The notes under the pieces were generated by a model that saw nothing but the letters and a program-made list of their open reading frames with translations, did no database searches and was not told the DNA's origin. Below are positions 901-29,215 of a stretch of DNA of 64,000 nucleotides, in pieces; the stretch's first letter is position 1; every line of letters starts with the position of its first letter. Made by a program: the position numbers and the translations under genes. The DNA comes from Takakia lepidozioides (Eukaryota; Plantae; Bryophyta): positions 59,458,001 through 59,522,000 of the forward strand of contig CM060733.1 of the NCBI GenBank assembly GCA_030704615.1, in the 5' to 3' direction.

Positions 901-1696
901 TGCATGAATTCCCCCCCCACATTCACTCACTTTCTTTCACATTGTGCTTCCTGGAATTACCTTTACTGTCAGGAGTCCTTCCACCAACTCCTAAGTCAGT
1001 GTAACTACTATGCAGTAGATGTTGAAGTCATACACCTCACTGTGGAGACCTGCGGATGAGATATCGCGGTTTTGGATGAAATTTGGTCAGTGACGGATGA
1101 AAAATCGACCGACTGTGGATATTTTTGGAGCCTTTTGGGGGCTTGTTTGAGGACTATTTGGGGTCTATTGAAGCTAATATCTTGCAGGGTGGGTCTGCAC
1201 CAGCAACAATGGAAATATGTCAGCAACTATGGGTATTCAACGACAACACGGACGAAGACAAATGAAAGTTACAGGAAATACCTTTTGCCCTGGAAACTCC
1301 CCCTTCGACAGAGGCAATGTATTAACACATGTCCATATTTTGTTGATTTGGAACCCAGAGGACTTCATGTAGCTATGAAGAATCCGGCGGGATGCCATGT
1401 CGTCAGATTGAAATATCAGAAGCCCCCCTGAGTCAGAGAGGAACTTGTTGCAGAAAGAGAATGCCCACTGCCAATACAGAGGGTTTTGAGCATTCCACTG
1501 TGGAGTCACAGCAGGGGGAATGATATCAAGCACAGGCTGCCCATCCGGGATGTCAAGGATTACAAGGTCAGCGGCGTAAGGCTGCTGGACACCGTTCACC
1601 CAACATGGATTCTTCGTCACCTGCCAAAAGCAAATGCAAGCGAATGAAATTGGGTAGTTGGTATACATTTAGGATACTGGTAGTACAAAACACTAG

Positions 1697-1730
1697 TGGA
1701 TTAAGATGTCGTTGACGACATCTTAATCCA
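1697..1730. repeat. Isolated palindrome TGGATTAAGATGTCGT-TG-ACGACATCTTAATCCA (16-bp arms) in an intron
   Basis: Read directly; lies in predicted intron 1794-1621. Confidence 0.9.
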
Positions 1731-2565
1731 GCAAATCCAAAACCCCACAATGTCATGAAATGGGAATCAAAGTTGAAAGATGCATGGGCATTACCAGGGT
1801 GAGGAAAGAGCAGAGGTGGTCCCATGCAGGAGATTTGACCCCTGTGAATGTGGACTTCCTGGACTCCATCATACGCAGGAAGCTGACGTTTGCCATTTTC
1901 CGCTGGAACTGCGGACCCACTACTCTGGAGACACAAAGTTGGGCTTCGTAAGGTCGTTTCCCTGCCCTGTGGTTAGTCCTTTCATCAGCTGTCACGGAAA
2001 TCTGTTGGACCTTTGTACACACAATGCGATGATCTACCTGTGGGCGATCAAGAACTGCCCCACCAGTCCCTGCAGGCCCTAACCCAGAATCAACGGCAGC
2101 CGTAGCACCGGCAGACCCACCTGCCTCCGCAGTCTGTTTCCCATTGTTTTTCTTCTTCCCACCCGCAGGGGTGGATGTCTTTGTTGGCTCCTTCTTACTC
2201 AGCTGCGCAAGGAACCTAGCCTGCAACTCCTCATCTGTCCGGGGTGCCAAGGCATCTGCATTCTCATTCTGATTCCTCAAGACGTTCTCCTCCCACGGAA
2301 TGGACTGTTGAGGGCAGTCGAGGTACCACTCGCAGTCGCTGTAATGTGCCCGACCCCAGTCCTTCACAATTCCCGCACTGAACATAGTGGTGTCGTCGTC
2401 TGGGTTCGCCCATCCACGAATAAAGTCCGGATCATCACTGAGAGCCTTATCTGGAATAAGAACGAAGTGAAAGTACCTGCATCCACACCAATGTTCCTAC
2501 TCAGAGCATATATCCCCACAGACCACAAGAACTCACCTGTTCATTGCATATTTGCAGACTACACC

Positions 2566-3023
2566 TTAAGATGTCGTTGACGACATCTTAAAATCCAGGA
2601 ACTTGAAGAGAATTTGAAGAGATACAGAACAACAGAAAACAGACATGCTCAACTGAACTATTTCCGAGAGCCCAAAGAACAGCCATTTAAGATGCCGTCA
2701 ACGCCATCTTAAATCAACCCCTACGCACATGGTATTTTTTCGTTGCCTGACGAAAAATGACTTGTTGGACTACAAAAGAATGTCTGTTACGACATCTTAA
2801 ATTGCAGGAAGCACAACAAAACAATGAAGACCTGCAGATGAACAAGAAACAGATGTGTGAAACTGTACAGTTTTGAAGAGCCCAAAGGGCAATGCTTTAA
2901 GGTGTCGTCAACGCCACCTTAAATCGACCCAGTTCATACATCGAATTCTTTGTGTAGTACCGAAAAATTGCTATTTGCACTACAGACAATGCCTGTTTTA
3001 AGATGTCGTCAACGACATCTTAA
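2566..3023. repeat. Four full copies and one half copy of the TTAAGATGTCGTCAACGACATCTTAA palindrome in an intron
   Basis: Copies at ~2566, ~2687, ~2897, ~2998 and a half copy at ~2780, all inside predicted intron 3052-2477. Confidence 0.88.
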
Positions 3024-4811
3024 TGTAGTGCCATCAACATAAAAGGCAGTACCTGTACAGAACTCGTTTCATTGCCTGCTCCCCATTATACTGATGGTCA
3101 AAGTCCTGCGAGCGCAGTATTCCCCCTTCCTTCTCGAACTCACGGAAAAATGCATACTTCCACAGCTCTCTTCTCCATTTCCGAACGTATGACTGGAACT
3201 TGATGCTCGGAGTGGTCATTGTGATCTTGTAGTCCAGCAGTGATTTCTCAAAAGTATTTATAGCCCGCTTCTCCAGCTGCACAACCATCCGCCACATTTT
3301 GAGTTAATCAACATAAGAAACCATGTACTCATTGCTGGAACAGTCACAATGTTTTTATAGTCTCACCTGGCTCCAGAAGGTCGCTTTCTGCAACCAAGTG
3401 TCGAATGCGCGGTCGCTGACAGGTGTCACCACCCCAGTCTCAGGGTCCTTCATTGGTTTTGGGAATTTGTTTGTATCCCGGATGATCGGATCCGAGTTCC
3501 AGATTTCCAGCCACCTCACTTTCTGAGCAGGGTCAACCATGGAAATTGAAAGGCGGTGGAGCTTTTCCTGTGTCATCTCTAGCTTAGTGGGCTTGTTCCA
3601 GTGGATCCGAACCCCTTTCCCAATCCGGGGTCAGCGATTCGAATGTGTTTGTCAAACGCGCTCTTGAGGTTCTTCATGCACATATCCATGTCCGCCTTCA
3701 TTTTTGCCTCCACCCCATTTGCCGTTCTCTCATCCTCATCGGTAGTGGCGTAATACTCCAGCTTGGCTTGTTTTCCTGCTTCTGCTATTTCTTGTTGTGA
3801 CACACCCATGTAACCCTCGTGTCAACAAAACCAAAGCAAAAACATGACATATCCATAATTCAAGAAGAATGGCAGTCCGCACATAAACTCACCGCGTACA
3901 AGTAGTCGAGAAACACCTCCCTTGTCAGGTTGTACCAAGTCTCATTCTTCTTGATCGTTTGGCACTTTTTCAGTGTGTCCGGGGACAAGACACTCGCAAA
4001 CGTTTCCAACGGCATCACTCCTATGCTTTGCATACGAAACAAGGAATGGACTATGTTGGTGGTGACATGGGATGTCTCCGTCCCCCTGCAATGCGAACAG
4101 GTCAGTTGACAAAGTTTAAAGATTGACAGAACAATGAAATTGGAGACAAGAAGTGGGCAAGACTCTTACTTGTTGATATCGTGCATTGCAGTTAGAAGCT
4201 GCGTGAACTTCCCCTCCGGATCGAGGACCATTGACTCAACCCGATAGTGTCACTCTATGTTCTCCGCATACATCCTGCTGATGTACTCCATCCAGGCCAC
4301 CAAATGGTGGTTGCCATCCCAGACAAAGAACATTTAGTTCATGTACCGGATGTGTGCTGGGTTCTGTGAAAGCTCAATCTCAAACTCCGTATTCACTTCT
4401 TTCCAAAGCGGGTCCCAACTGTCCATTACATCGAGGTCAACCAATTTCTCAGATCCCTGGAGATCAGTCAATGACACGTAAAACACAGCCGAACTCTTCA
4501 AGTACCCATGGATAAAATCCCCTTGTAGCTTCTTGATGTCGTGGTGAAGGGCAAGCCGAACTGCTGTCATAGAAATCATCCGGCACAGAGGAATGAAAAG
4601 AGTGTCGTCTTTCACTACCATGGAGTTGATGACTTTCCTCGAGTTCACCTTGGTGGTGTACATAAGAGAGTGCACCTTGGCTTCATAGTTGGCGTCCACA
4701 ACAACGTCCTTGTCTTCAAGAACAACTGTTTCCTCTGCAGGCTGGCTTCCCCCGGCTTTCTTTCTCTTTTTCTGCAGAATGCAATGTGTTAGGACACACA
4801 AATCATGGCAC

Positions 4812-5766
4812 GATTAAGATGTCGTCAACAACATCTTAATTTGATGTTATTCCATGGTGATTTCCCAATGTTTGAGGGTCAATGCAGTTGTAGATTAAGG
4901 TGTCGTTGACGACATCTCAATCTGTTGTAGTTCTAGAGTGTTTCAGATTGCTTCAGTGTTTCAGAGTGATTTTCTCATGTTTTGGGTTCAATTCATTGGA
5001 GATGAAGATGTCGTCAATGACATCTTAATCTACTACAGTTATAGGGTGATTTTCGCATGTTTTGAACTGAATGCAGGAGCAGATTAAGATGTCGTCAACG
5101 CCCACCTTAATCTGATGTAGTTGTAGGGTGTTTTTTGGATGTTTTATGTTGAATTCATTGGCAGATTAAGATGTCGTCAACGACAGCTTAATCGGCGGTT
5201 TTTCAAGGGTGATTTCCCCATGTTTGAGGTTCAATGCAGTGGTAGATTAAGGTCTCGTTGACGACATCTTAATCTGCTATAGTTCTAGTGTGCTCCAGAT
5301 TGATTTTTTGATGTTTTCGGTTCACATCATTGGAGATTAAGATGTCGTCAATGACATCTTAATGTGCTACAGTTGTAGGGTGTTTTTCTCATATGTTGGA
5401 CTGAATGTAGAAGCAGATTAAGATGTCGTCAACGCCACCTTAATCTGCTGTAGTTGTAGGGTGTTTTTTGGATGTCTTAAGTTCAATTCATTGGCAGATT
5501 AAAATGTCGTTAACGACAGCTTAATCGGCTATTTTCCTAGAGTGATTTCCCCATGTTTGAGGTTGACTGCAGAGGCAGATTAAGATGTCGTCAATGACAT
5601 CAATCTGCTGTTTTTCAAGGTGATTTCCCCATTTTCGAAGTTGAATGCAGTGACAGATTAAGCTGTCGTCAATGACAGCTTAATCTGTTGTAGTTCTTGG
5701 GTGTTTTCTCCATGTTTTTGGTAGAACGTAGTAGCAGATTAAGGTGTTGTCAACGACACCTTAATC
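4812..5766. repeat. Tandem array of 12 units (~81-bp period) with conserved 30-bp palindromic core GATTAAGATGTCGT-CA-ACGACATCTTAATC
   Basis: Cores start at 4812, 4893, 5001, 5082, 5164, 5245, 5335, 5416, 5497, 5578, 5656, 5737. The ~51-bp linkers are homologous to each other but more diverged. A higher-order 4-unit repeat of ~334 bp is visible. Confidence 0.95.
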
Positions 5767-6198
5767 TTCCTTCACTTTAACCTTCCTAAGTAAACCTTTA
5801 CCTGCAAAGGTGACCTTTTAGGTAGCGTTATCGACACCTCAATCTAACTCCTTTGTGTTGCAAAGACCATGGATTCGAATGTACGAACTAACCTTCTCTG
5901 GCTTCGTTCCTCCGCTAGAAGACCCGCCCCCCACTGCACACCTTCTGCCTTGCACCTGGCTCTTCTCCTTCACGGATTTTGGAGGCACTTGTGTGTTTTT
6001 CTCCTGCTCCTCAGTGCCTGTGACCTGTCGTGGACACTGCATTATTTGCACCTCCTCCTCCTGAGCGACATGACCCTGTTCTGGCATGGTCTGCTCTTGA
6101 ACTGCAGGATCCACAGATGAGATCGGACGCTGACTCTCCCAAGCCTTCTTCCGCTTTCTCTGCCAAAAAACATAATGAAGGTAAGCATTGCAGGCCCA

Positions 6199-6432
6199 GA
6201 TTAAGGTGTCGTCAACGCCATCTTAATCCTATACATATTGCAGGCTGTTGCACTCATACAGCGACAGCATTGGGCTCGCTACAACTAAGAGCTTTGCCTC
6301 TCGGAGGTGGCAGATTAAGTTGTCGTCATCGATAGCTTACTCACTTTGCTCTGAACTTGTTCGAAACCCTTTCAAATGCAATGGTGGACATGATGCGATG
6401 CCGTTTAAGCAATCGTCAAAGTCATCTTCAAC
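6199..6432. repeat. Further degenerate copies of the same palindrome in an upstream intron
   Basis: GATTAAGGTGTCGTCAACGCCATCTTAATC at 6199; weaker copies at ~6313 and ~6405. Confidence 0.75.
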
Positions 6433-7297
6433 TCAAATGTATGTTTCTTACTGCTCTTCTTATCGCTTCGAGTCAGGGAACAAGGTCATGTAAAGCCAAT
6501 GTGCTGCTGAACTCACCTGGATCAAACTCTGTCCACCGCTGGAAGTGTCCTCCTCTCCCAGCCCGACGTTGCTTTCTGCTTGAGCCTTCTCCTTCAACGG
6601 GCGCAAAGACAGCTGCATGGAGGAGGGCCGCCCCCTTGTCGGCAGGCCCCTCTGCGGACTTTGTTGCGTTGCCTCCTCCTCCGCAGGAGTACCGCTCTCC
6701 CTTTCGACTTCCTCCTCCTGTATCGGTTGCAATAGAGGCAGCTCCAATAGATCCTCGAGCTACTTTTCCAGAATGGGCTCCTTCCCTGCCAAACTCTCCA
6801 TCCCTTCGCCCACAGAACCCTCCCCCTCACGATCGCTCCCTCCCTTTGACAAGTTCAAGCCCTCCTAGCTTTCTTCATCCTCTCTCTTGCTCTCAACCTC
6901 TGCCTAGCAGACGTGAAGTACAGAGACCGCCTTCTCGCTCTCTTCTTTCCGGAAATGCTCTCGTTCTTGGGATGCTCCAGTGTGGCGAGTCTGAAATGAT
7001 GAACGCCAGAATGTAACCTTCGAAGACATCCCTCGGGCAAATGACAAAAGTTGATGGCGGTTAGGTTTTCATCCCTCCCTCTCAAGGAAACTAATCATCC
7101 AAAAACGTAACGGCTCATAATTGGGGTTTTTGTTTTTTGGCGGGATGCTTGCGGGCTATCTCGCAGAGAACTCGACACCTGTTGCCCTTGCAAGACACTT
7201 AAATATAGGCATGTCACATATCCATGTTAGACATAAGGGGTTCGACCCACACCGCAGTCACTGAGGATGTGGCATCTGCAAAGTCGGCCGCAATTCT

Positions 7298-7930
7298 CAC
7301 TAGAAGCATTCGTGTCATTTACCACTGGGGTAACGACTCATTTTGAGTCGTAAAAGTCAAAAAACAGGGATCGACTGGAAGTTACAACAGACGTGGTAGT
7401 TGGGTTGGACATCCAATGATTGGAGTGGTAAAGGACGTAGACACGCGAACAACTGCTCAACGATTAATGCGATTAATGCTGAAGAACCACGTGGCGTAAC
7501 CAGGCGGGCCGCCCGTGTGTCTGATGTTTTGAGCTGACTTTGACTTTTCCCTCCGGATGAGTGGACTGACTCACCTGGGGCGCGGTGACACATGGACGCG
7601 GACGTGGATGCGGTCGTGGATGCCGATGTGGCGGCGCCTCGACGAGCGGTAATGCCGCCGCGTGGCCACGGGCTCAAGACGCCACATCGCAGTCGGCCAC
7701 ATAACTTGGAGTGTTGCATGTCACGTGGCAACAGCCACTGGCGAAGTCGACTGCACAACTGCCGGCAGACGAATCCACGGGGACCACGTGGAGAGTGTGT
7801 GGGTCGACGCGTGGCGTCGTCCCCACGCAATGGCAGTGAGGGGTACGACTGCTAGTGGAAAGACGCAGAGTGCTTGTGCCATCTCGGGACTGCTTTGGCC
7901 AACTCCGCTGCCACTATGCTAGTTGGTTGC
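7298..7930 (+). mobile_element. CACTA terminus (CACTAGAAGCATTCGTGTCATTTACCAC) with subterminal region
   Basis: Homology with the inverted copy at 24418-26945 stops exactly at CACTA (7298-7302) and TAGTG (26941-26945). Subterminal hairpin ACGACTC-N5-GAGTCGT at 7333-7351, then a CpG-rich, palindrome-rich stretch. Confidence 0.85.
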
Positions 7931-8411
7931 ACTACAGTAGGAAAGCACTGCAAATGAACACTTGTAGTGGTTTGTGTGAGTTGTCCAACTGACTTGCATT
8001 CTAAGCTGAAAATATGGTTCTGATGCATTCTATTGGTTTTAGTGGTTCACCCATATGCAGGGGGAATTGAGAAGCAATGATACTGGGCGACACTCAGAAC
8101 ACAGACCACGATGCATGCACAACATCGCGCTAATGAACCAAATAGACGAGGCAACAGGGAGACCAAAGACCATCACACATACACATAGAAGGTGGACGGA
8201 CACGACGACAAGTCAGGAAATGGAATATTGCATTGAAATTGGAGACCGTCACGGCACACCTGCATATGAGCAAGACTAAATGCCAACATACATGGTTGCC
8301 GGACATCACTTAAACTGTCATGGCCCAAATGTACAAAACTGGTAACGTGAGTATCATACACACTTCTATGAGTATCATTACACACCCAACAGGGACTACA
8401 AACATGAAATG

Positions 8412-11400
8412 TCACTTGATACCTTCACCCCTCCTCATACTCTTCTCTGGCCATAGAGTCACCGTGCCTTTCACGTGCGCTAGTGTGGTCTGGGGGGGGG
8501 CATCGTCCACATTTGGGCAAGGCAGTGTAACACTTGGAAGCATGATCTCGTGGACTTTCACCTTGTACCACCCGGATGGAATGTCCTTGCAGTGGAACTT
8601 GTCAACCCCGGCTATTCCCACCACCTCCGCCTTGGCGGCGGCTGTCTTTGACCGCTTGTCATGGGGGTTCAGGAGAAGCACAGGATCTGATATCTGCAGA
8701 CACCAACATCAGGGTCCACTCAGCAACAAACATAGCAATGACAGGGTGAAAGTCAAGCGCAGCTGGGCATGGAAATGATCTTGGTTGCCACAATACTGAA
8801 TCAGCAGCAAATTCATGGTATACCAACCTACCTTGAAGCGAAGCTCGTCGCTGAGGGTGGCAACTGAGGAAAGCTGCCCACGTGTCTTCAACTGCAGCAG
8901 CAAAAAGAGGTTTAGTCAGACGGATAAGAATAACATGAACTCTGGTGGTTGCAATGGTATAAACACACCTCCACGGAGCAAGCTAACTTACACCCTGCTC
9001 AGACTGTGCACACTACAACCTCCTGGCAAAAATAACCCTACTAAAAACCAGCCAGGCAAAGCAAGGAGCCATGAATGCATGCCTGGGGAACCACGTCCTG
9101 CTGCGATGATGGTGCCGGGGACAGCCCACTCCTCTTGCTCACCTGCAATGAATACACATTGCAACGCTTCAGGAAGTGTATCCATAAAGGAAACCAACCA
9201 AGTAAGTTTGCGGAGAGGGGCTGGGAACAACCATACCTTGGAGCCTGCCTCCTCATGCCGGGGGGGAATCCGGAATGCTGCCGCCGTAGCACTATGGTCC
9301 TTGGCGCAGGACCCACCTTCTTCACAGACGACCCCACTGCCACTCCCTGTACATGTGGTCCCTGCAAAACATATAGTGCCAGCCTTGCGTGAGAGGGCAT
9401 CCGGGGGGAACAAAACAAACATATCTTATCCATCGATGTCATGTTGCAAACAGTAAGGTTAGTTTCACCTGCATGGGCGCAGAAGTACTTCCCCCAACGA
9501 CCCCATCCTCTCCCACATTCAAGCTGCCAGTCGGGGTCAGCTTCCGCGTGCTTGTGAAGACACGCACATCCTTGGAGCAAAACAAATCTTGGCAGTAGGG
9601 CCAGACTGTTTCTAAAAGGTACTCTGAATCGGGCCCCTCACTGACATTGCTAGTGACATCAAACGACAATGGATGGACCATGTTCAAAGGGGAGTTCCCC
9701 CTCCCCTTGTGTGGTGAATCATCCACTAGGAGGGTGTTGGATTCGTTAAATCCAGAAAATTCCGACCACACCCTCGACAGTCTCTTCTGTAAGTTCTGTA
9801 CGGCAGGCCCTTTTGTGGGGTGTGGCTCTGTCAAGGGGTCACACTCCTCTTGTGACCACACAAAGAGGGGAGAACCCTTGACCCCCTGCATCACCACTTT
9901 GAAGATGTCTGCAACATTCCCCTTGGAAGCACAGGACCATATCCCAACGTAGAAATGCTGGAAGAGAAGGTTTAAAAACTCGCAGACCTGGGGCCTTGGG
10001 AAAACATACTTGTTGGTGGTCAACACCCATGGCCAATGACGCCTCGGGTTGGGCTGAAAGTTAGGAATAGAGTGGCACAGGATCCCGTTCAGGTCTAGAA
10101 CAATTAGTTTCGACTTTTCTATGAAAGGAGCTTTTGAAGGGGTGTCACGGGGTCTCACCTCAGTGGGTTGGGAGACAACAGTCACCCTGGAGGGCAAAGT
10201 TTCGGTCCCCCTGCAGCCTGGACCAGGCAAACTACCACCCTCTCCCCCTACAGCTTCCCCTTTTCCTTGATAGAATGAGCAATGACCCCCCCATCGTCCA
10301 TGTCATCCCCACCAACTCGCTGGACCTCTCCCTCTTCAACGAGTGGACCCTACCCCCCACTGTGAATATCATCAACAACAGGCTGGACCTCTGTCACATC
10401 CCTACCCACTACAATTACTTCCTCCTTCTCAGGTACAATGGTCGCAGCAGGGGGGTCTTCCATAATGCCACCCGTCACACCCCCTTTTTGCCTCATCATG
10501 AGTTCCACTATCTTCTTCAGTTGTGCTTCCATTCCCCTCTCCCGCTCCGCAGAGAGAGCCGCAAGCCTCTCCAGGCCCCGATGCGGGCTGCCATTGAGTT
10601 CCCCGCTCCCTACGCATACAAACACCCACCCGTACTGTTAAAAACCAGAAGAAGAGGCCGAATGTGCAGGATTTCAGGCATTCGGAGATGGCTGGGTTTG
10701 GCATAACACCCCTCGTGTACCATGCGTGGGGGCCCCACATACCCACCAAATCTTAGTACAACAACAGATTCATGAATGGAAACCGGACTTCAAAACATAC
10801 CTGGCTCAAAACAGACTCTGATGGGGTGCCAGTCGCATAGTTCTTTTGCTCCGCCCCGAGCTCGGACAGTGACGGGCTCCGCGCTTTGCGTCTTTTCTGT
10901 ATTTGCCCATCCACACACTGTCAGTACAAAATGCCAGGAGCATATGGACAAAGCACTGCCCTGCATATCACATAACAACTAATTCTGCACAAGCAATAAA
11001 ACCCACTCGTGGGTGTCTCTTCCATCAGAACATGCCACAACGTAGGAGCAATGAGAAGGGGGTGAGGAGATTACCAAACGGGCTGCTTGGCCTGCAACTC
11101 CTGCCCGGCCCCAACGCGAGGGGTTCGTGACACAAGCACGCGCTTGCTTCATCCCTTCAGCCTTTGCAAGTCCACGAGGGGACTCCCAGTAGGCAACAAG
11201 CTTATCCCAATAGGCGGGTTCAGTGTTCATTGGCCTCACACCAGTCTTTGCCCATTTATCTTTCAGTTTTGCTCTTTCTCCTTTCATTATCTTCCCACAT
11301 TGCTTCACTATAAAATCACGATTGGCAGGGATAGGTCTGTACTCGTACATTCCATTTATGCCCTCTATTACTGTTGACATGGCACTCTGGGACTGCTGGT

Positions 11401-11944
11401 CAATGTCTTGTACGCTTGAGTCAAGGTAACGCAATGCCAGGCCACGCAAATCACGCTGCCAGTGTTCCTTACCTTCGCAGCCAACATTGATGACTCCATT
11501 TCCATGCACCTCCACCTTGTGGCGCTTTAGCCCTGCAGCCACCCTTCCCTCTCCATCTCCTTCCCATTGTTTCATGGCATGGCGTCGTTCCTTCCTCAGC
11601 TCTGATGTCCGTTTCCTGCCCCCATGCTCTGGAGCAGCGCCGTCATACGTTGTGGGGGGTGACTGATGTGTGCCGGAGGGGGGAGGGCCGTATGGAGATG
11701 TGGGAGGCCCCCATTGTGACGTGCCAGCATCAGGAAGCCAGCGCCACGACCCTGAAGCAGGGGGGGCTCCCCATGGTGCACTCTGTTGTGGAGACCATGC
11801 GGCAGGGGGTGGGTGCCAAGGTTGGTGTTGGTTGGCATTGTGTGGTGGCTGTGAGTGCTTTGCTGCAGCTTCACTCCCCTTCCGCTGCCAAAAACATCCC
11901 ACAACAAGGTGCATCAGCTGTAGTCCTACTGAACACAACGTCAC
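8412..11944 (-). pseudogene. CACTA TnpA-like gene: Ptta/En/Spm-type domain + FCP1/NIF (HAD) phosphatase-like domain + C-terminal Tnp1/En/Spm-like domain
   Basis: 10979..11944: WDKLVAYWES..KAEGMKQARACVTNPSRWGRAG (Ptta-like). 9439..10230: KLIVLDLNGIL, FPRPQVCEFL, VGIWSCA, LFVWSQEEC, NTLLVDDSPHK (NIF). 8412..8694: GVDKFHCKDIPSGWYKVKV..LPCPNVDD..VKGTVTLW (Tnp1-like). Short linker exons at ~9360-9237, ~9142-9083, ~8892-8833. Stop at 10350, frameshifts near 10257 and 9262. Confidence 0.78.
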
Positions 11945-12344
11945 CAGAGCACAAACGATCCCACAACCACAACTATGGATTGGCTGACCTCAAACCCACT
12001 CCCCTGCAGCGCAAGTGCCAAAAACTGAAAAGGAGAGGGACAGAATGTCCTCATAACATGTAAGGCCATTCATTGGTGAAGAAACATAATGTGGGCGGGT
12101 TCACATCAGTACCATCATACACACTTACCAGGAAACAGAACGGGTTTTGCACATAGGGAGTGGACATCTATTCACACAATCAGCAAATGGCTGTATGGCG
12201 GAGCCCAGCATCGGAGCCCCAAAAGGCCTAAAGACTCTCAATGTTTGTAAACACAGGTGCAGACACAATTCAATTGATAGCTTGGATATCCGGTGGTCTG
12301 TATGGTGATAGCACCCCGGGCAGTGAGTCAGACAATGACCCTAT

Positions 12345-16512: not shown

Positions 16513-17091
16513 CCGAAGACCTGCTTGCCCTCTTCTACAGCTGGGCACAGGGAGTGTCGTTGAGGCTGAAAAGGGGAAATTTGACCAGGTCATATCCGTT
16601 TGTGTTACTTCGAAGGTGTGGGCCAGCCTGCCAGAAGGTCAAAACAGGTGCATGCTGACATATGAAAGTCTGGCGTCGTGGAGATTGTTGGCTGTGAGGT
16701 GGGGATGGGGTTATCATCTTTCCTGGTAAATGAAGATATGATTGACATATCTCCTCTCCCATAAACTGTCACATTTCCTATAGGAAGTTCTTGTGACGCC
16801 CTTGACATGCTGTTGATGTGAATGAAAGCAGGCTGCAGTAGCAACAATGGAGAATTCAGGGTGTTTGGATTGGGGCAGAGCATACCATGGAAGAGAACAA
16901 GGGGCCCAATAGTTCGTGCAGTTGGGGGAGTTGATGTATGTACTTCCCCACACGGCCTTTGCCTCTCTTCACCATCTGTACCGAAGGTGCATAGATGGAA
17001 CAAATCTCCAGTCTTTTGGTGTGCTCTTGTAATTCTGATATGCCCATAGACCCACTTCTCTCTCCTGTCTGTCTTGAGTTCCCCAACAAAA

Positions 17092-20000
17092 ATGAGTTCC
17101 CCTCGCCCATGCGGAGGACTTCCAATTAATCACCCCTGTAGACAGAACAACCGGGATGACAGGTTGTGGGAAAGAGAAGTGGCACGTGCCCGAGCCCTTG
17201 GGCTTTCAAGGATGCCATGCCCATGTGAACGTTGTTTGGGCACTACAAGTAGATCTGAGGACGGTGTGCGCACACATCTCCTTCACCACAAAAGACATGA
17301 AGCATTTCGGGTGTGGATTGGAGATGGACCTGCAGACGAAGACGATGAGGAGTGGGCACAATTGGACAATGCACACCCCCGAGGGAGCCATACAGACAGG
17401 CCAGACGAGGACTATGTCATGGGCGCAGGACAGGAACCAGGCATGGACGGAGGGGTGGAGATTACTCGAATGTTGCAGGAAGCATTCCACATCATGGACG
17501 ATGCTGAAGAGGGGGACGGCGCTGCGACAACTGGGGATGGTGATGACGCAGGAAATGAAGGCATTCACGTGGGGGAAGGCGTGGAAGGAGGTGGAGATGG
17601 AAATGAGAATTCTGCACACATGACACTAGAAGAAGCATGTGTGCCACTGTACGAGGGATGCAAATCCACAAAGCTTGCTGCCAGCATGCTGTTGATGAAC
17701 CTGTGCACAACCCACGGTGTGTCAGACCATTTTGTGGACGAGTTGTTCTCTTTGCTTCGGCTGAACTTGCTTCCACAACCAAATGAAATGCCAAAAAGCT
17801 GTCACATGGCCAACAAAATGATTGGGAAGCTCGGCCTCAACTACGTGAAAATACATGCATGTCCAAAAGGACATGTACTTTTCAGAAGAGAGTACAAGGA
17901 CGCTATGGAGTGCCCCAAATGCGGTGCAGCCCGATACCATGATGTGGGCAGGTTACAACAGCCAGCCAAGGTGTTGAGGCACTTTCCCCTTATCCCCCGT
18001 CTATTACGAATGTACAAATGCAAGACCATTAGTGAGCTCATGACTTGGCATTCCAGGAATGCCTCAAACGATGGTTTGGTAAGGCATGTCCCAGATTCCC
18101 TTGCATGGAAGCATATAGATGCAACTTGGCCCGATTTCGCCGAGGACCCACGCAATGTGCGATTGGCTGTATCTACGGATGGAGTAAACCCATACGGATC
18201 AAAGAGTTGCACATGGTCCACATGGCCCGTGCAGTTGGTGGCATACAACCTGCCACCATGGTTGACAACAAAGAAATTCTTTGTCATGTTGTCTCTCTTG
18301 ATTCCAGGCAAGGAGTCCGTGACAAATGCAAACATAGATGTGTATTTGCAACCATTGATTGAAGAGCTACAGGAACTATGGATTGGAGTTGAAGCTTACG
18401 ACATTTTGAAACCAGTAGGGCAACGGAGTTTCACCCTCCGTGCCATACTCATGTGGTCAATCCACGATTTCCCCGCATATGGCCTTGTTGCGGGTTGCAA
18501 GACGAAGGGCTACAAAGGGTGCCCCATTTGTGGGCCCTATGTGGATTCACGGCACTCAAAGCCATTAGGGAAGACAATATACATGGGGCATCGACGTTAC
18601 CTTGCAAGAAACCACCCCTACCGACGAGCAGGCCGACACTTCAATGGATGTGTTGAAAAGAGAATGGCACCAAATGCTGTGACACCGGAGGAGACATTGC
18701 AATTTGCAAAGGAGAAAGAGGCGTTCATGGAGATTGGAGGGAGAGAAGGAAGTAGTGCGGATCCAGCCATGTCGCACGGGGTGAAGCGCCGGACAATCCT
18801 TTGGGATTTGCCATACTGGAAGGTGCATGAATCCCCCCCCCCCCATTCACTCACTTTCTTTCACATTGTGCTTCCTGGAATTACCTTTACTGTCAGGAGT
18901 CCTTCCACCAACTCCTAAGTCAGTGTAACTACTATGCAGTAGATGTTGAAGTCGTACACCTCACTGTGTAGAGGATCGTGCAGTTGTTGAAAGCAGAATG
19001 TAGTAACATGGACAACTTCTGCCACATATTCTACTATTTTTGCCCATAGAACTTGGTCTCATGGGAGGACATTTGGCATTTCAGAACCTCTTGCAGCGGT
19101 ACCTCCTGGACCCCATGCATTGTGAGAAGAACTTCTGCGAGAACATTCTGAAGACTATCTTTGGGGAGAAGGATACGATAAACGTACGAAAGGACATGGA
19201 GATTGAAGGGATACGGTCACATCTGTGGCTAAGGCCTGATCCAAATAGACCAGGCAAAGTGCTCATGCCAGCAGCATCATACGTCCTGACCAAATCAGAG
19301 CAAGAGGAATTTTTGAAGACATTGGGAGCCATGAAAGTGCCAACCGGATTCTCGGGTGCTTTCCAAAAGCATGCCATAAACAAGAAATGGTCGGGGATGA
19401 AGTCACATGATCTACACGTGATGATGCAGCAGATTTTGCCAGTGTGCATTCGGGGTACGATGGCGTCGGGTCCTCGAACAGCCATAATGCGTGTAAGTCG
19501 AGTGTTTAGGAAGATTTGTGCGAAGGTGTGGGATCCGAGGGACATTACATCGCTGCATGAGGATGTGGCTGTGACCCTATGTTTGCTGGAGAAAGAATTC
19601 CCTCCATCATTCTTTGACGTCATGACGCACTTGCTAGTGCATCTTGTAGAGGAGCTGCATGTGTGTGGGCCCGTAGCCAGCCGTTGGATGTACCCCATGG
19701 AGAGGTACATGAAGGATCTGAAGGGGTATGTACGCAACATGGCACGGCCAGAGGGGAGTATGGCGGAGGGCTACATCCGCGACGAAGCCCTGGGCTTCAT
19801 GACAGAGTATATGTCTTCATTTGATGCAATACAACGACGGGTGTGGGACGAGAACGAGGAAGAAGGAGTTGTAGGCGAGGTCCTAGAAGGTGGTGGAACA
19901 AAGCGTGCCATGAGCCCGCGCCTTCGGGATGTGGCACATGATTATGTGCTGAACAACACAACAACCATGACACCATGGAGACAGTGGGTGTAAACTTTAC

Positions 20001-21166
20001 ATCCCTCCTGTGCTATTCTTAATGGTCTTTGTATGCATGAATTACATATATATTGTCACAAGTCATTCCGGCCACTATGGGAGTGGGATCGTGTACTAAC
20101 AGGGTGCTTCAGACGACAACAGAGGGTGTTTCGTAGTTGGTGTTGTTGCTTGCAAGTGATCATGAAGTAGGCTGCATCACTACAATGTGCTTGAAAGGAC
20201 ACACTCTACATGTGGCATGCATGTACAGTACGGTGTTGGTCAGGGGGACTGAGTTGCAGCTTCTATTTGGTTTCTGCCAGAAAATACGCAGCGGAGAAGG
20301 TCCGCCTGAAAACGGAACGGAGAGCATTTGCAAAAGCATGGCGGAGGGGCGGTCGTAGGCGCAGATCCCCGGTGGAGTACCCGACAACAATGGAGGAGCT
20401 GCAGCCCTTTACAGTGTGGGTCAGATCTGCAATTGCAGTGTACGCATCAGAGAACGAGGACCCAGATGAGGGCATGGTGAGTCTGTCATTCCCCCCAGGG
20501 CTGATTGCCACTTCGTACCGGTCAATGAAAGCATATGGCAATCACTATAGAGTGGACGATGCCAACACCAGCCTCCTGGTGACTTATGACAGCGGAGTGG
20601 CATCATTTTTTGAACAAGAGAGTAGGAGCTGTGCACGAGATCGGAATCCAATTTCATGCCATGTGCAATATGTAGGAGTGATCAAAGAGATCCTTAAACT
20701 AGACTATGGTCTTGTGAAGCCAATTCTATTCCGTTGTTCTTGGGTAAAAGCCAATATGGTAGGAGAGAATGCCACCATGAAACGGGATGAGTACGGGTTC
20801 CTCCTTGCTGATTTCAGAAAAATGCTACCACAAGATGAAGAGCCATTCATCTTCCCATCGCAAGTTGAGCAAGTTTTCTTTTCAGATGACATCCATGCGC
20901 CGGGATGGAAGGTGGTTCTTCACAAGGACCCCCGGGCCAAACGAGTCGTTGCCGACGTCCATGATCTGGACCTAGGGGAGAATGCCGACCACGAGGGTCT
21001 GAGGGAACCACGAAATCTACCAGATACGGCCGAACCAGTCTCTTTGGAAGGAGCAGTTACCTTTAATGAGGAAGACATTCCAGGGTTGGTAATTACCGCC
21101 AGGCAAATTGCAGATGTGGGTAGTGAAGGGGAAGATTATTTGGATACGGATAGTGAGCCCAGCTGA
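17092..21166 (+). CDS. CACTA (En/Spm) TnpD-type transposase, apparently intact, 3 exons, ~1171 aa (Transposase_21 + DUF4218 + DUF4216 arrangement)
   Basis: Exons 17092-18822, 19085-19983, 20281-21166 join in frame (3516 nt) with GT..AG borders. Motifs CPCERC, HACPKG..CPKC, STDGVNPY, IHDFPAY, LDPMHCEKN, MKSHD, FPPSFFDVMTHLLVHL, WMYPMER, EPFIFPSQVEQVFF. Confidence 0.93.
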
Positions 21167-21995
21167 ATCTCAGTGTCCATTAAGCCAGCAGCTCATAGAC
21201 GAGAGCTATGCTAAGGACTCTTACTGTCCTTAGAACCCATTTTGTACAGTCCTGCTTATAAGCAAGGGCGAGACAGTTAATAGTATCGATAATGTATGGG
21301 TATGTGGTCACTGACTGTCTTGTGAACAAACCTTTTTTTGTTCTGCCCATATTGTTTCTGACATGTGAGGAGAGGATCGTCTTCATGTACGGGAAGTAGA
21401 CGTGAATGTGTGCATGCATTTTCTGGCCCATCTGCATGCTTTCCAGGAACAAAGACCAGTGGAATGGGGGGTGTCTCCAAAGGAGCAGGACCGAACGACA
21501 CCTTTTTGTGCTTCCCTTGCTTTCCTTCTCACCGTTGTTCCATTCTCCCACCTGCCCAACAGCAGCACTCTCGAAGCAATAGCATGACATATGTTCGCAC
21601 ATGGTCTTCTTCACCAGTGAATGAGCTTTTATGCTACATGTACTGCCCCGTCCACATTAACGTTGATCCCTGCAAGCACTTGGCAAGACACCCCAGAGCC
21701 GCAAATCCAGCAACCACCACAAACACATCTAACTGATTGTAGTGACACGGGAATAGCTCACTTGTAGAGGAATTGAACCTCCAGCCAAATGAATGGCTCT
21801 GCCCCTTGTAGCACAAGTGCGATGCAAAAACAAGGTGAGTACAAAATGAAGAAGCACTTACGAGGTCCCCATCCCTGGGATGGGCTCCCACTTCTGCTCT
21901 GGAACTGTGCAGGCCTGAGTAGCACCAAATTGCATGAATCCTAAGCCTGAATGTCAAATGCAGGTTTATGTCGCGATGTAGCACGCCATCATCTT
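21167..21995. mobile_element. CACTA internal segment downstream of the transposase, shared with 31399-32222; may hold a degenerate minus-strand ORF
   Basis: Colinear homology between the two copies. The minus frame DINLHLTFRLRIHA..HPRDGDL / LDVFVVVAGFAALG stays open in both. Homology ends at ~21995. Confidence 0.65.
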
Positions 21996-23144: not shown

Positions 23145-24400
23145 CTAATAACTTACAGTTGTCATGAAGGCACCCCACTGTCTATATCTGAAGTGCCAGA
23201 ACCCCAACCAGTCTTCCAGTTCTTTGATTCCATCCAGACTGGCTGCCTCAGATGAGTACCACCATGCTCGAATAGTCTGGAACATAGAGTTGGCTTCCTG
23301 TTCGGAGGTGGCTTCTTTATACATACGGCATAGTCTCATATGCTCCTCCCGCAACTCCAGTTTTATGGAACTCTTTGTGTGGCGTTGTAGGGACTGGCTC
23401 CAATGAAAGAGGCAAGTGCGTTCCCGGCCTTCCATTGGTACTTTGGGGTCGCCTGAACCAAAAACTGTACGGACAGCATTCCAATTCGCTTGAGCGCTGT
23501 CAGCCATGAACCCAGTGAAGTTTGGATCTGGGACACCATGAGTTGTCACGACGTTAACAAGGGACTTCCACATAAGAATTTGTGACTCTGTGTCCTCTGA
23601 CTGCATGTCACAAACAACAACAGTCATCACTCTCTGGTATGCACGATTGTATACATGACAGGCCATGGTCGTCCATTCCTTCATACGTTTCACGTGATCA
23701 AACATAACCCAGGATTTCTGAAGATCACCACCAGGCTGCATTCTTTGCACCAGACTAACTCCCGATCCCTCACCAACTGTGGACATCTTGAATAAGTACA
23801 CTTTCCTGGCACCTTGCCCCGGGAAAACACTGTCCTGAATGAAGTCATATCGGCTTATACGCTTTAACTCCAGGATGTTATCCATAAAGCATGTGTTGGG
23901 AGCACCCCCCCTTAGGACGTTGATTTGATTTCGCACATTCGGAGAACTCAATGTTGAGAAATGGTCCAGAACATCGTCAAGGGAGTCAGTGTCAAATTTA
24001 GTGGTGGACTCCGGCGATTCCCCAAACAAATACTTTTGTAGGAATCCTTTGTTTGCTGCCAGAGCAATGGCTGATGGCGATGCACCAGGAGCACTATGAA
24101 TTTTGTGTTGAAGCAGTGAACGGACTGTATCAATTGTCTCTCTGCACTGTCCTCAGGACACCGGATGTTATCAACAAATGAGGTTGTCTCTTCTCTTTTG
24201 ATGGGCAGAGTTTTGGGCACCTGAGCCACCGACGCTACTGTTCCGGGCGTGACTATGGAACCTCCCGACAGACGTCTTTGATCCCCATGAATGCGATACT
24301 TTGCTGGTGGAACTCTCCACTCTCACCGACTGCCAGACAAATGTGGTTTCTGAACGCATGTGCCCTCGACCTTACCCACTTTGTCATACACCTCTCTCAC
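23145..24400 (-). mobile_element. Mutator-like (MULE) DDE transposase fragment
   Basis: ORF 23145..24029: VMFDHVKR, ACHVY, FTGFMADSAQANWNAVRTVF, CLFHWSQSL. The upstream frame continues as SAIALAANKGFLQKYLF. Truncated at the ~24415 junction. Confidence 0.82.
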
Positions 24401-24417
24401 TACATGTACAGTCCCTG

Positions 24418-26945
24418 CCCCTCGACAGAGCCACACCCCACAAAAGGCCCTGCCGTACAGAACTTACAGAAGAGACTGTCGAGGGTGTGGTCGGAATTTT
24501 CTGGATTTAATGAATCCAACACCCTCTTAGTGGATGATTCACCACACAAGGGGAAGGGGAACTCCCCTTTGAACATGGTCCATCCATTGTCGTTTGATGT
24601 CACTGGCAATGTCAGTGAGGTGCCTGATTCAGACTACATTTTAGAAACAGTCTGGCCCTACTGCCAAGATTTGTTTTGCTCCAAGGATGTGCGTGTCTTC
24701 ACAGGCACGCGGAAGCTGACCCCGACTGGCAGCTTGAATGCGGGAGATGATGGGGTCGTTGGGGGAAGTGCTTCTGTGCCCATGCAGGTGAAAGTAACCT
24801 TACTGTTTGCAACATGACATCGAAGCCAAATGAGATGTTTGTTTTGTTCCCCCTGGATGCCCTCTCACGCATGGATGGCACTATATGTTTTGCAGGGACC
24901 ACAATGAGTGGTTTTGTGTTGAATGTGAAGAAGGTGGGTCATGCGCCAAGGACCATAGTGCTACGGCGCCAGCATTCTGGATCTGCCCCCCGACATGAGG
25001 AGGCAGCGCCCAAGGTATGGTTTGTTCCCAGCCCCTCTCCGCAAACTTGCTTGGCTGGTTTCCTTTATGGATACACTTCCTGAAGCGTTGCATTGTGTGT
25101 TCATTGCAGGTGAGCAAGATGAGTGGGCTGTCCCTGACACCATCATCGCAGCAGGACGTGGTTTCCCCAGGCATGCATTCATGGCTCCTTGCTTTTGCCT
25201 GGTTTCTAGTAGGGTTATTTTTGCCAGGAAGTTGTAGTGTGCCCCTAAGCAGGGTGTTTGTTAGCTTGCTCCGTGGAGGTGTGTTTATACCATTGCAGCA
25301 ACCAGAGTTCATGTTATTCTTATCCGTCTGAGTAAACCTCTTTTCGCTGCTGCAGTTGAAGACACGTGGGCAGCTTTCCTCGGTTGCCACCCTCAGCGAC
25401 GAGCCTCGCTTCAAGGTACGTTGGTACACCCCAAATTTGCTGCTGATTCAGTATCGTGGCAACCACGATCGTTTCCATGGCCAGCTGCGCTTGACTTTCA
25501 CCCTGTCATTGCTATGTTTGATGCTGAGTGGTAGTTGATGTTGGTGTCTGTAGATATCAGATCCTGTGTTTCTCCTGAACCCCAATGACAAGCGGTCAAA
25601 GACAGCCGCCGCAAAGGCGGAAGTGGTGGGAATAGCAGGGGTTGACAAGTTCCACTGCAAGGACATTCGTTCCGGGTGGTACAAGGTGAAAGTCCACGAG
25701 ATCATGCTTCCAAGTGTTACGTTGCCTTGCCCAAATCTGGACGATGCCCCCCCCCCCCCAGACCACACTAGCGCACGTGAAAGACAAGGTGACTCTGTGG
25801 CCAAAGAAGAGTATGAGGAAAGGTGAAAGTGTCAAGTGAGATTTCATGTTTGTAGTCCTTGTTGGGTGTGTAATGATACTCATAGAAGTGTGTATGATAC
25901 TCATGTTACCAGTTTTGAACATTTGGGCCATGACAGTTTATGTAATGTCCGGCAACCATGTATGTTGGCATTTTGTCTTGCTCATACGCATGTATGTCGT
26001 GACGGTCTCTTATCTGAATGCGATATCACATTTTCCTGACTTGTCGTCGTGTCCGTCCACCTTCTATGTGTATATGTGATGGTCTTTGGTCTCTCGGGAC
26101 TACGTCTATTTGGTTCATTAGCATGATGTTGTGCATGCATCGTGGTCTGTGTTCTGAGTTTCGCCCAGTATCATTGCTTCTCAATTCCCCCTACATATGG
26201 GTGAACCACTAAAACCACTAGAATGCATCAGAATCATACTTTCAGCTTAGAATGCAGGTCATTTGGACAACTCACACAAACCACTACAAGTGCTTGTTTG
26301 CAGTGCTTTCCTAGTGTAGTGCAACCAACTAGCACAGTGGCAGCGGAGTTGGCCAAAACAGTCCCGAGAGGGCACAACCACTCTGCATCTTTCCACTAGT
26401 AGTCGTACCCCTCACTACCATTGCATTGGGACGACGCCACGCGTCGACCCACACACTCTCTACATGATCCCCGTGGATTTGTCTGCCGGCAGTTGTGCAG
26501 TCGACTTCGCTAGTCGCTGTTGCCACCTGACATGTAGCACTCCAAGTTATGTGGCCGACTACGACGTAGCGTCCTGGGCCCGTGGCCACGCGGCAACATT
26601 GCCGCTTGTTGCGGCGCTGCCACATCGGCGTCCACGTCCGCGTCCATGTGCCACCGCGCCCCGGTGAGTCAGTCCACTCATCCGGAGGGAGAAGTCAAAG
26701 TCAGACCAAAAGGTCAGACACACGGGCGGCCGACCTGGTTACGCCACGTGGTTCTTCAGCATTAATCGCTGAGCAGTTGTTCGCGCGTCTGCGTCTTTTA
26801 CCACTCTAATCATTGGATGTCCAACCCAACTACCACCTCTGTTGTAACTAGTCATTTGTAACTTCCAGTCGATCCCATTTTTTTGACTTTTACGACTCAA
26901 AACGAGTCGTTACCCTAGTGGTAAATGACATGAATGCTTCTAGTG
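24418..26945 (+). mobile_element. Inverted second copy of the TnpA-side CACTA end: 3' part of the NIF/Tnp1 gene, subterminal region and terminus (TAGTG)
   Basis: Reverse-complement homolog of ~7298-9837 (roughly 90% by eye), with frameshifts. Confidence 0.9.
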
Positions 26946-27084
26946 CTAGTTATTTCCTAGCTAGTTTTACACTAGCTACCTTAAACTAAATAGTTTCATA
27001 CTAACTAGTAAATTAACTAGTGAACTAGTTAATTTAACTAACATCAATATCCACTTGACAGCTGTTGTGCGCATACATATCGTT

Positions 27085-27795
27085 ACAGTTGTTATGTGAT
27101 ATGCAATGTAGTGCTTTGTCCATATGCTCATGGCATTTTGTACTGACAGTGTGTGGGTGGGCAAATACAGAAGAGACGCAAAGCGCGGAGCCCGTCACTG
27201 TCCGAGCTCGGGGCGGAGCAAAAGAACGCTTCGACTGGCACCCCATCAGAGTCTGTTTTGAGCCAGGTATGTTTTGAAGTCCGGTTTCCATTCATGAATC
27301 TGTTGTTGTACTAAGATTTGGTGGGTATGTGGGTCCCCCACGCATGGTACACGAGGGGTGTTATACCAAACCCAGCCATCTCCGAATGCCTGAAATCCCG
27401 CGCATTCGGCCTCTTCTTTTGGTTTTTAACAGTATGGGTGGGTGTTTGTATATATGCGCAGGGAGCGGGGAACTCAATGGCAGCCCACATCGGGGCCCTG
27501 GAGAGGCTTTGCGGCTCATTCTGCGGATCGGGTGAGGGGTATGGAAGCACAGCTGAAGAAGATAGTGGAACTCATGATGGGGAAAAAAAAGGGTGTGACA
27601 GGTGGCAGTATGGAAGACCCCCCTGCTGCGAACATTGTACCTGACAAGGAGGAAGTAATTGTAGTGGGTAGGGATGTGACCGAGGTCTAGCCTGTTGTTG
27701 ATGATATTCACAGTGGGGGCCAGGGTCCACTCATTGAAGAGGGAGAGGTCCAGCAAGCTGGTGGGGATGACATGGACGATGGGGGGGTCATTGCT
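27085..27795 (+). mobile_element. Displaced fragment of the second TnpA-like gene copy (intron plus linker exon)
   Basis: Reverse-complement homolog of ~10279-10980 (MEAQLKKIVELMM..EEVIVVGRDVTEV). Confidence 0.88.
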
Positions 27796-28284
27796 GGGGG
27801 ATGCTATTGTGTGAGATCCCGCGAGCAGAAAATTGCATGAGCAGAAATCTGCTCACGCTTGAGGACCTACCTACCTATAACCGCGGACGTCCAGTCGACT
27901 TAGAAGACTTATTACTACGCAGAGTGGCCAGTATCAGAAGGTCGGATATGGATGCTGCTTGGATGAATGAGGGATGAATGTCGGATGAATGTTTGTGTAA
28001 CGAATGAGAGGTGGATGAATGACATAAATGAAAGATTAGATAATTGTTTGTAGTGGTAGCTCCCAAAAGCTCGGAGATGCATGAAACCATACTTGACTTG
28101 CTTGAAAATCAATTATGCTGGGTGCAGTGTATATTGCAAACTTTGAGTCCAACTTTGTTGATTGAGAAGGACCACATGTCATTTTCCCAGTTATACAACG
28201 TTGATAGAGAGGATCACATCCAATCATGAAGAAGGCAAACATGTGAACTCTTGGTTTTTAAACAAACCCTTCAAAAGAATCGAT

Positions 28285-29215
28285 TCATTCGGACAAAGAA
28301 GATCCACTGCTACAGGACGCACTGTTTAGGACGAAGGCAGAACTGTCCACAAAGACGCTAGCCCTGCTCTGCTGAAAACCATGTCTTTCGTGTAGTAGAG
28401 AAGGTGGAGATGCCAGCAGACTATACTCCTTAGCCGCAGCCTCTGCATAAGCTGGCAAATGAAATTGTGCTTGAGGACTTGGAAAAAAATCCGGGTTGGC
28501 AAAGAAGGGCAGAAACCGTGGTGTCATATGACTCCTGCAACCACACAGTAATGAGTAAAATTGGTAAATACTCTGGAAGCCAAACTGCAGCCAAACAAAG
28601 GAGCACCAAAAGGATCCGTCATGGGGTCTATGAGTTGCCACAAAAGAACATGCACTTACTTACATGAAAAATCCGAATCCACATCCAGAGCATCCGGCTC
28701 TTGCACATCCTCCTCCTCAACAATCTTCTCAGTCTGGGTTGAATGCGAGGATCCCTCAGAGAGTGGAGCGATGACTCGAGAGTAAAGCTCCTCGTCCCCT
28801 GAAACCCAAAAAGATGTCTTCATGCACACTTGCAGGCATGGAACGAAGCCCCTGTAAGATAGCGAATGAATGCACGAAACCATGTCAGAAGCCAAAACAT
28901 GAGAGAAACATGTGCAACGAAGAATGAAGAAGAGTTTTGGCATGCACCTGAGCCCATGGAGAGGTCAACCACTTTGTCACCATGCCGGCTGTATGTCTCA
29001 ATGAAGGTCTGCATGAACGCGGGCAACTTCTCCCGGGCACCTCTCCCTGGAATTCCTCCAGTCTTTTTCAGAGTCTGGGACGCATCCACATAGTTGTGAA
29101 CAACATCAGATTTGACTGGGTCGCAATCTGGGTCTATGTGCAGACCTCCTCCCCAAATGTCGAAATGCCCAACATAAGCAAGAGTGTTGGCAGGCCGAAT
29201 TCGTGACAGGCAAAT
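28285..29215 (-). pseudogene. C-terminal half of the amino-DNA-methyltransferase-like gene (motif X, motif I SAM-binding, motif II)
   Basis: Exon 29215-28948 spliced to 28851-28664 gives REKLPAFMQTFIETYSRHGDKVVDLSMGSG-ASFHACKCA*RHLFGF(Q)GDEELY. This matches the beta-class pattern KP..L...I..YS..GD.VLDPF.GSG.T..A....R...G.E.D..Y. One stop (28820) and one frameshift (~28797). The 3' end is uncertain. Confidence 0.8.

Follow-up and report, generated by a model that had tools for sequence, protein, structure and literature searches.

A 64,000-nt stretch of Takakia lepidozioides DNA (CM060733.1, 59,458,001–59,522,000; the whole stretch is hereafter called the window) holds two widely separated pieces of coding sequence on its minus strand, and raises the question of whether these belong to one gene, what that gene encoded and which element carried it. 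An earlier note had read the pieces as parts of a single spliced gene that joins a ParB/Srx-like domain to a beta-class amino-DNA-methyltransferase, carried as cargo by a large CACTA transposon. We conclude, with a probability of about three in four, that both pieces come from a single dead gene copy, of which they form the two halves, and that this was an accessory gene belonging to a Mutator-like DNA transposon family. On this reading the CACTA neighbourhood of the gene is a rearrangement accident, because the copy was broken inside an intron and its halves were joined to the halves of a CACTA transposase open reading frame (ORF). The main value of the locus is that it corrects this assignment: the gene is not cargo of a CACTA element.

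The two pieces derive from one ancestral gene

All peptides on which the gene had been recognized were found on the minus strand where they had been reported: VWDGNHHLVAW at 4324–4292 (codons gtc tgg gat ggc aac cac cat, the second His being CAT), DLVILDIPDG at 1569–1540 and FLSDSGGLLIF, both of the latter within the ORF 1668–1240, and EKLPAFMQTFIETYSRHGDKVVDLSMGSGA in the ORF 29272–28820. The last exon of the gene (28820–28659, minus) finishes at a stop that is common to the family. Pfam gave no match for the individual ORFs of the gene in the window, and the relatives compared gave no homolog match for the upstream exons 7029–4812 that had also been proposed.

The 143-amino acid (aa) exon 1668–1240 was compared with 1.84 billion representatives using phmmer, which returned 116 matches (best 6e-25), mostly exon-sized fragments; throughout the analysis, single exons or intact relatives served as queries. 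A further homolog search with P0102 and with an alignment, restricted by its word index and a length filter, yielded a handful of relatives. Six longer proteins (P0102, P0061, P0017, P0033, P0010, and P0038) carry both halves, and in these the segments follow in the order D[ILV]P[DE], then WRGxxExDxxF and GDxVxDxxAxTG, with ACRxxGRxxxALEED where the protein is complete. An intact relative of the gene was present on an ENA metagenome scaffold of 5,084 bp (L002). This scaffold is colinear with the window segments 4771–4169, 4090–3869, 3797–3052, 2487–1792, and 1659–1267, and then continues directly with 29236–28865 and 28820–28659 (30–55% identity); five loci of another genome are likewise colinear across both pieces. 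Other copies in the same genome were investigated by comparing contigs with window positions 1–4800, where 295–867 contigs matched. In those matching from 1190 onward, this position is preceded by ...AGGCAAATCGCCTTGAACACA, and GGCAAAT is the final sequence of the second piece at 29215. As L002 is colinear with both pieces, six proteins carry both halves and contigs link 29215 to 1190, the two pieces represent one ancestral gene, and joining them was justified. The break falls in the intron between the exon ending at about 1240 and the exon starting at about 29182.

The window copy is dead and rearranged. Besides the split, its ParB exon contains two in-frame stops (N*MFFVW and NIE*HY), and it reads DGNHH where the intact L002 has FFVWDGNHRLQAW; the window copy therefore carries the histidine in place of arginine as a lesion of its own. 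A CGT codon turned into CAT fits CpG decay, in line with the earlier suggestion that CAT is a deaminated CGT in a pseudogenised copy.

The N-terminal domain resembles ParB and Srx

Among 99 homologs of the L002 ParB exon, 49 were used for an alignment, in which D169, G170, N171, H172, R173, and A176 were conserved in at least 90% of the sequences. These residues form a G-x-x-R-x-x-A pattern (DGNHRxQA), which we take to be that of ParB box II. An AlphaFold (AF2) model of the intact relative P0140 reached a predicted local distance difference test score (pLDDT) of 82.5. Searching with this model in Foldseek, the first 47 rows were all ParB, Noc, Srx, KorB, PadC, SerK or SbnI (best E 1e-2), and VIA, which is independent of Foldseek, gave Z values of 8.1 for KorB, 7.8 for PadC, 6.6 for pNOB8 ParB-N, 6.5 for Arabidopsis Srx and 6.1 for SerK. 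When the alignment of the ParB domain was compared as a profile with the PDB, 0 matches were returned at E up to 10. Based on the predicted structure and the near-invariant DGNHR of the relatives, we accept the proposed ParB/Srx-like fold for the N-terminal domain.

The C-terminal domain has a methyltransferase-like fold and an altered catalytic motif

A profile of the six relatives aligned to CcrM along the full length of the domain (E 0.034), the next match being a type III Mod. In the CcrM alignment VDLIFADPPYNL is paired with vDLiiadiPdnl, and the second segment with WRGakekDelFmesLilsttdeGdvvvDvkaatGta. An AlphaFold model of residues 296–580 of P0102 (pLDDT 77) matched CcrM in Foldseek at E 1e-7. 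With the same model, VIA gave Z values of 12.5 for CcrM (180 residues aligned), 12.2 for M.BceJIV, 11.9 for M.MboIIA, 11.8 for the rotifer N4CMT (8s9n_A), 11.6 for M.PvuII and 10.9 for M.RsrI; type III Mods scored about 10, MT-A70 proteins 8–10 and ordinary Rossmann methyltransferases at most 6.5. The model thus supports a beta-class amino-methyltransferase (MTase)-like fold with the motif order IV...X-I-II.

Motif IV, however, follows x[DEQ][ILVY]P[DE] in 81 family sequences (most commonly AQVPD, ADIPE, AEYPD, and ADVPE, also ADLPE; LDIPD in the window), and the canonical (D/N/S)PP(Y/F/W) was observed in none of the 81. Motifs X, I, and II are kept in the family as WRGxxExD..F, GDxVxD..AxTG, and GRxxxALEED, the acidic residue of motif II lying in ALEED; motif I of the window reads DLSMGSGA against the family GDxVxDxxAxTG, the putative S-adenosylmethionine (SAM)-binding loop being kept in part. 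As motif IV is non-canonical throughout the family, methyltransferase catalysis appears doubtful from the sequences. The beta-class assignment made earlier consequently stands for the fold and for the position of motif IV before X and I, but not in the catalytic sense, motif IV never being DPPY.

The domain of intact copies could nevertheless mark the element by active methylation of its DNA at N6-adenine or N4-cytosine, as was proposed for algal proteins. The beta-class fold with its kept motifs X, I, and II and the conservation of the domain across diverged families would fit such an enzyme, but the 81 motif IV sequences would not, and the canonical motif is also missing from METTL14 and MTA9, both of which act as partners without catalysis. 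We consider an active enzyme possible, though doubtful. Because motif IV has become x[DEQ][ILVY]P[DE] while motifs X, I, and II were kept, the domain is more likely to be a module that binds SAM and whose transferase activity is altered or lost than to be a classical writer of N6-methyladenine (6mA) or N4-methylcytosine (4mC).

Relatives of the gene are paired with a probable Mutator-like transposase

The surroundings of related genes were investigated in six long comparison loci (L008–L013), all from one assembly (ERZ25073694). In five of them (L008–L012) the ParB-MTase gene has a large gene, H, 3–5 kb upstream, encoded on the other strand in head-to-head orientation. The pairing is old, since the H proteins of these loci share only 28–80% identity. 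A homolog of the CACTA transposase was found in none of the six loci. In L013, a protein containing DUF7869 (6150–8969, plus; PF25273, 6e-33) precedes the gene on the same strand instead of the divergent H, and may indicate a different carrier.

The window contains a truncated core of H on the minus strand. Compared with Atlas clusters, this fragment gave feature values of 0.92–0.95, with most matches in clusters carrying PF10551 MULE. A D...D...CxxH pattern is visible in the H translation, and the downstream H ORFs showed weak SWIM matches (E 0.0065 and 0.46). The elements of L011 and L012 have about 13.8 kb in common at 84–88% identity and end in inverted termini, GGAnnnnGCTAGTAyGTGAGC. A candidate 10-bp duplication, ATTCAGTTTA, was found for L012, in a repetitive flank; around the L011 element no target duplication was seen. 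With moderate confidence we regard the carrier as Mutator-like. Carriage of the gene by a transposon, as the earlier note held, is supported; in the relatives it occurs together with H in repeat-bounded units.

These units also bear on the idea that the sequence represents a host or domesticated gene which happens to sit among many transposons. In favor of this, contigs that resemble transcripts contain long intact ORFs (P0102, 596 aa; P0061, 494 aa), showing that the gene is expressed somewhere; but each genome has many diverged copies, mostly fragments, the synteny with the transposase inside repeat-bounded units is constant, and the window copy is decayed. We give this explanation hardly any credence.

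The CACTA neighbourhood probably results from a rearrangement

Two copies of a CACTA transposase are present in the window (Table 1). Copy A is uninterrupted. Copy B is split at 1048|29216 by a block of 28.2 kb, and the two gene pieces form the two ends of that block. Other genomic copies of the transposase run on past 1048 with GGATCGTG.AGTTGTTG, as copy A does. Each of the two junctions, 1048|1049 and 29215|29216, interrupts the transposase ORF midway and, on the other side, falls inside the intron of the gene; CACTA termini were found at neither end of the 28.2-kb block. No other copy of the filler at 1049–1189 was detected within the window. The 5' side of the gene stops at 7297, where it abuts a 2.5-kb inverted repeat.

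According to the earlier note, the gene would be cargo of a large CACTA element and serve it as an epigenetic or anti-silencing module. It is true that both gene halves abut CACTA transposase sequence and that a CACTAG-initiated repeat bounds the 5' side of the gene at 7298. The junctions, however, lie mid-ORF and in an intron, with filler DNA and without termini; most genomic copies of the transposase continue through 1048 without a break; 7298 is flanked by TCT and 26945 by CTA, so that a matching 3-bp duplication is absent; and in the related loci the partner was MULE-like in five of six and never a CACTA transposase. Carriage by a CACTA element is thus very improbable, and this part of the earlier proposal is not supported.

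Both arms of the 2.5-kb inverted repeat start with CACTAGAAGCATTC and may be the same end of two head-to-head CACTA copies; transposase copy A and the fragment of H lie between them. Arm A was considered as the 5' part of H and rejected: the N-terminal Cys-rich part of H is absent from A and A', and the H match stops sharply at 24167. A 700-bp inverted pair, B/B' (10278–10980 and 27087–27795), was also considered as possible element termini; its flanks showed no duplication. This pair is 94% identical and has the same left-to-right order as A/A', so the two are separate pairs and not one inverted duplication.

The CACTA transposase and the gene are both high-copy repeats in the genome. The summed word depth reached thousands over the transposase part, several-fold above the values for the gene, which ranged from hundreds to about a thousand and peaked sharply at the palindrome at 1701.

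Alternatively, the split may be an assembly mis-join in this repeat-dense region, with a contiguous gene copy in the real chromosome. Such an error would be favored by the copy numbers of gene and transposase (word depths of hundreds to thousands, and the contig counts given above) and by the circular permutation, which is hard to make in one step; moreover, no contig piece among those listed bridges 1048|1049. Yet the two junctions are reciprocal, and each is present and precise; the divergence of copy B from copy A is 4–5% on either side, as expected for one old interrupted copy, and filler DNA is typical of real illegitimate recombination. We therefore judge a mis-join to be quite unlikely, and it would leave the identity of the gene unchanged.

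Points weighing against an accessory gene of a Mutator-like family

Several observations count against the reading of the pieces as a dead accessory gene of Mutator-like transposons. The gene and copy B are placed as though a circle, cut open within the intron of the gene, had entered the transposase, a circularly permuted arrangement that comes without a worked-out mechanism: inversion, tandem duplication followed by deletion, and insertion of a circle were considered, and none was demonstrable. The lack of a listed contig across 1048|1049 counts here as well, and the termini of the element of the ParB-MTase gene were not found in the window. Regarding the domains, Pfam ParBc (PF02195) matched none of the 49 aligned family members at E up to 1, and the ParB assignment comes from a predicted structure with weak Foldseek E-values (1e-2). 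PF01555, to which the earlier note had looked for the methyltransferase, did not recover it: one of ten relatives was matched (P0102, at 20.8 bits against a cut-off of 26.7 bits), while the nine others and the window ORFs gave no match. The pairing with H was seen in loci from a single source, and the class of H is drawn from language-model similarity, motif reading and the weak SWIM matches, with Pfam MULE not found in H at E up to 10 and the PDB search giving none either. Finally, we infer both the binding of DNA at the palindromes described below and any enzymatic activity.

Element-specific palindromes and a proposed mechanism

A 26-bp palindrome, TTAAGATGTCGTCAACGACATCTTAA, has 23 matches in the window at ≤3 mismatches, all within 1701–6226, where 0 were expected by chance. 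In another, distant relative, L004, the palindrome TCTGTCGGATCCGACAGA is present in five copies between exons, and L008 and L009 have GTTCGGTGCCGAAC arrays between H and the gene; at the stringency used, no palindromes were detected in L010–L013. The window palindrome (ATGTCGT..ACGACAT) and CTGTCGGATCCGACAG of L004 (1896–2520) have the arms TGTCG...CGACA in common, a hint that the core of the recognition sequence may be conserved.

The intact product would probably have been about 1,100 aa long, as estimated from the 3.9-kb span in L002, with an N-terminal ParB/Srx-like domain, a conserved middle region in which one segment is rich in Cys and His, and, at the C-terminus, a domain resembling beta-class amino-methyltransferases. 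Its gene would normally lie head-to-head with a MULE-like, SWIM-bearing transposase inside terminal inverted repeats, often beside palindrome arrays. The protein might recognize the palindromes of its own element, as ParB does parS, and then act on or shield the element's DNA. The window copy would later have been broken in its intron and its halves joined to those of the CACTA transposase, with 140 bp of filler at one junction and a truncated H left nearby.

A further step would be that the MTase-like domain, with its conserved D[ILVY]P[DE] motif, is not a decayed enzyme at all, but performs a new chemistry or binds DNA under the control of SAM; in concert with a ParB-like domain that switches with its nucleotide, it might load at the palindrome arrays and shield Mutator-like transposons of land plants from silencing by the host. 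We hold this to be tentative and on balance unlikely; if true, plant transposons would possess a self-recognition system of the ParB/parS style.

Features of the window

The coordinates of the gene, its neighbours and the repeats are given in Table 1.

Table 1. Features of the 64,000-nt Takakia lepidozioides window, ordered by position.
Feature	Position	Strand	Evidence
CACTA transposase copy B, 5' part	1–1048	+	96.4% identical to 17916–18972 of copy A
Filler of about 140 bp from another repeat	1049–1189		contigs matching to 1188 diverge; those from 1190 are preceded by gene sequence
MTase-like domain, N-half exon; motif IV-like DIPD at 1554–1543	1240–1668	-	phmmer matches; 43% identity to L002; fold from relatives
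Palindrome TTAAGATGTCGTCAACGACATCTTAA: array of 81-bp period at 4812–5766 and single copies in introns	1701–6226		motif count
Cys/His-rich segment (CxCRYxHF...WYLDCP) and low-complexity linker	1792–2487	-	30% identity to L002 2236–3147
Conserved middle region; frame change at about 3612 (intron or frameshift)	3052–3797	-	41–43% identity to L002 1520–2284
Conserved CRGTETSHVTTN exon	3869–4090	-	55% identity to L002 1096–1392
ParB/Srx-like domain with two in-frame stops; DGNHH at 4318–4304	4169–4771	-	45% identity to L002 369–1043
Proposed upstream exons, possibly promoter or intergenic DNA	5767–7297	-	proposal of the earlier note; no homolog match
Inverted-repeat arm A, beginning CACTAGAAGC	7298–9838	+	90.8% identical to 26945–24418, inverted; bounds the 5' side of the gene
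Uninterrupted CACTA transposase copy A	17074–21972	+	Transposase_21 3.8e-75, DUF4218 1.3e-37, DUF4216 3.6e-11
Truncated core of MULE-like transposase H	23154–24167	-	44–47% identity to H ORFs of L008–L012
Inverted-repeat arm A'	24418–26945	-	self-comparison with arm A
MTase-like domain, C-half: motifs X and I (RGAREKLPAF...GDKVVDLSMGSGA) at about 29182–28940	28659–29215	-	36–39% identity to L002 3610–4313; matches P0010, P0061, P0102
CACTA transposase copy B, 3' part	29216–32201	+	95.0% identical to 18981–21972; DUF4218 1.9e-24

Several further features were observed. An ORF at 9439–10230 (minus), lying partly in arm A, has a NIF/CTD-phosphatase-like domain (PF03031, 1.2e-13) and may be a captured fragment of a host gene. 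A weak match to Transposase_24 (En/Spm TnpA-like; 10979–11944, minus; E 0.088) and another to the terminal part of a reverse transcriptase (RVT_1; 13586–14089, plus; E 0.0056) point to nested transposon debris between the gene and copy A. Two intact ORFs look like ordinary host genes: a PPR protein of 803 aa at 40356–42767 (minus; PPR_2, 2e-149) and a 776-aa ORF with a weak Peptidase_M50 match at 48900–51230 (minus). At 54961–55209 an 82-bp unit occurs in three tandem copies (95% identical).

Comparison with known systems

To our knowledge, transposon proteins that recognize and modify their own element are rare, and VANC of VANDAL is the tested case; we know of ParB-methyltransferase accessory genes being noted in algal transposons in 2011 and 2025, never of their being tested. 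Like the protein described here, VANC of the Arabidopsis VANDAL elements (Mutator) is a Mutator-borne accessory protein, and its presumed targets are short sequence motifs that occur in clusters within its own element. The fold of VANC is unrelated, and VANC causes loss of methylation.

With the bacterial and phage beta-class methyltransferases (CcrM, M.MboIIA, M.PvuII, M.RsrI, type III Mod) the family shares the fold and the order IV...X-I-II, the best Z values being 10.9–12.5; in contrast to them, it lacks DPPY/SPPY, contains introns and resides in eukaryotic transposons. The altered catalytic motif throughout the family poses the question of whether the protein is a writer or only a binder. 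Fusions of ParB-N with a methylase in prokaryotic mobile elements are also among the closest known systems. Rotifer N4CMT and MpDN4MT1a/b of Marchantia are eukaryotic 4mC methyltransferases of bacterial origin, and the former shares the beta-class fold (Z 11.8, a similarity of fold). Unlike our family, these genes belong to the host, their catalytic motifs are canonical and their activity has been shown; the MpDN4MT1 preprint mentions no ParB domain.

The closest parallels come from algae. In red algae, PAG2 combines a PF01555 methylase with SET, and PAG3 a ParB-like domain with a 2-oxoglutarate (2OG) oxygenase and adjacent inverted-repeat arrays; the genes occur on Plavaka, Mutator, and Zisupton elements and move between these superfamilies (Petroll et al., 2025, 10.1101/2025.02.11.637652). 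Similar to our family are the ParB-like domain on a transposon accessory protein, the inverted-repeat arrays beside the gene and the beta-class methylase as cargo. In the red algae, however, ParB and methylase are on two proteins with other partners, whereas here they are fused, and the methylase of PAG2 is recognized by Pfam, which is not the case here.

In the brown alga Ectocarpus, the transposon Sola1-1_Ec32 encodes, opposite its transposase, a ParB-like and DNA-methyltransferase protein of 1,104 aa, for which binding and modification of the element that encodes it were proposed (Dinatale et al., 2025, PMC12477816). Judged by this published description, the two proteins are alike in their length of about 1,100 aa, in a ParB-like front and an N4C/N6A-type methyltransferase back, and in their position opposite the transposase of a large DNA transposon. 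In the window the opposite-strand arrangement of gene and transposase is broken; it is kept in L008–L012. The carriers differ, being Sola1 in the brown alga and a MULE-like element in the plant genome. Our literature search found no report of ParB-MTase transposon genes for land plants. The family is thus the same published kind of accessory gene as in brown, red, and green algal transposons, and is distinct in its plant genome, its MULE-like partner and the family-wide non-canonical motif IV.

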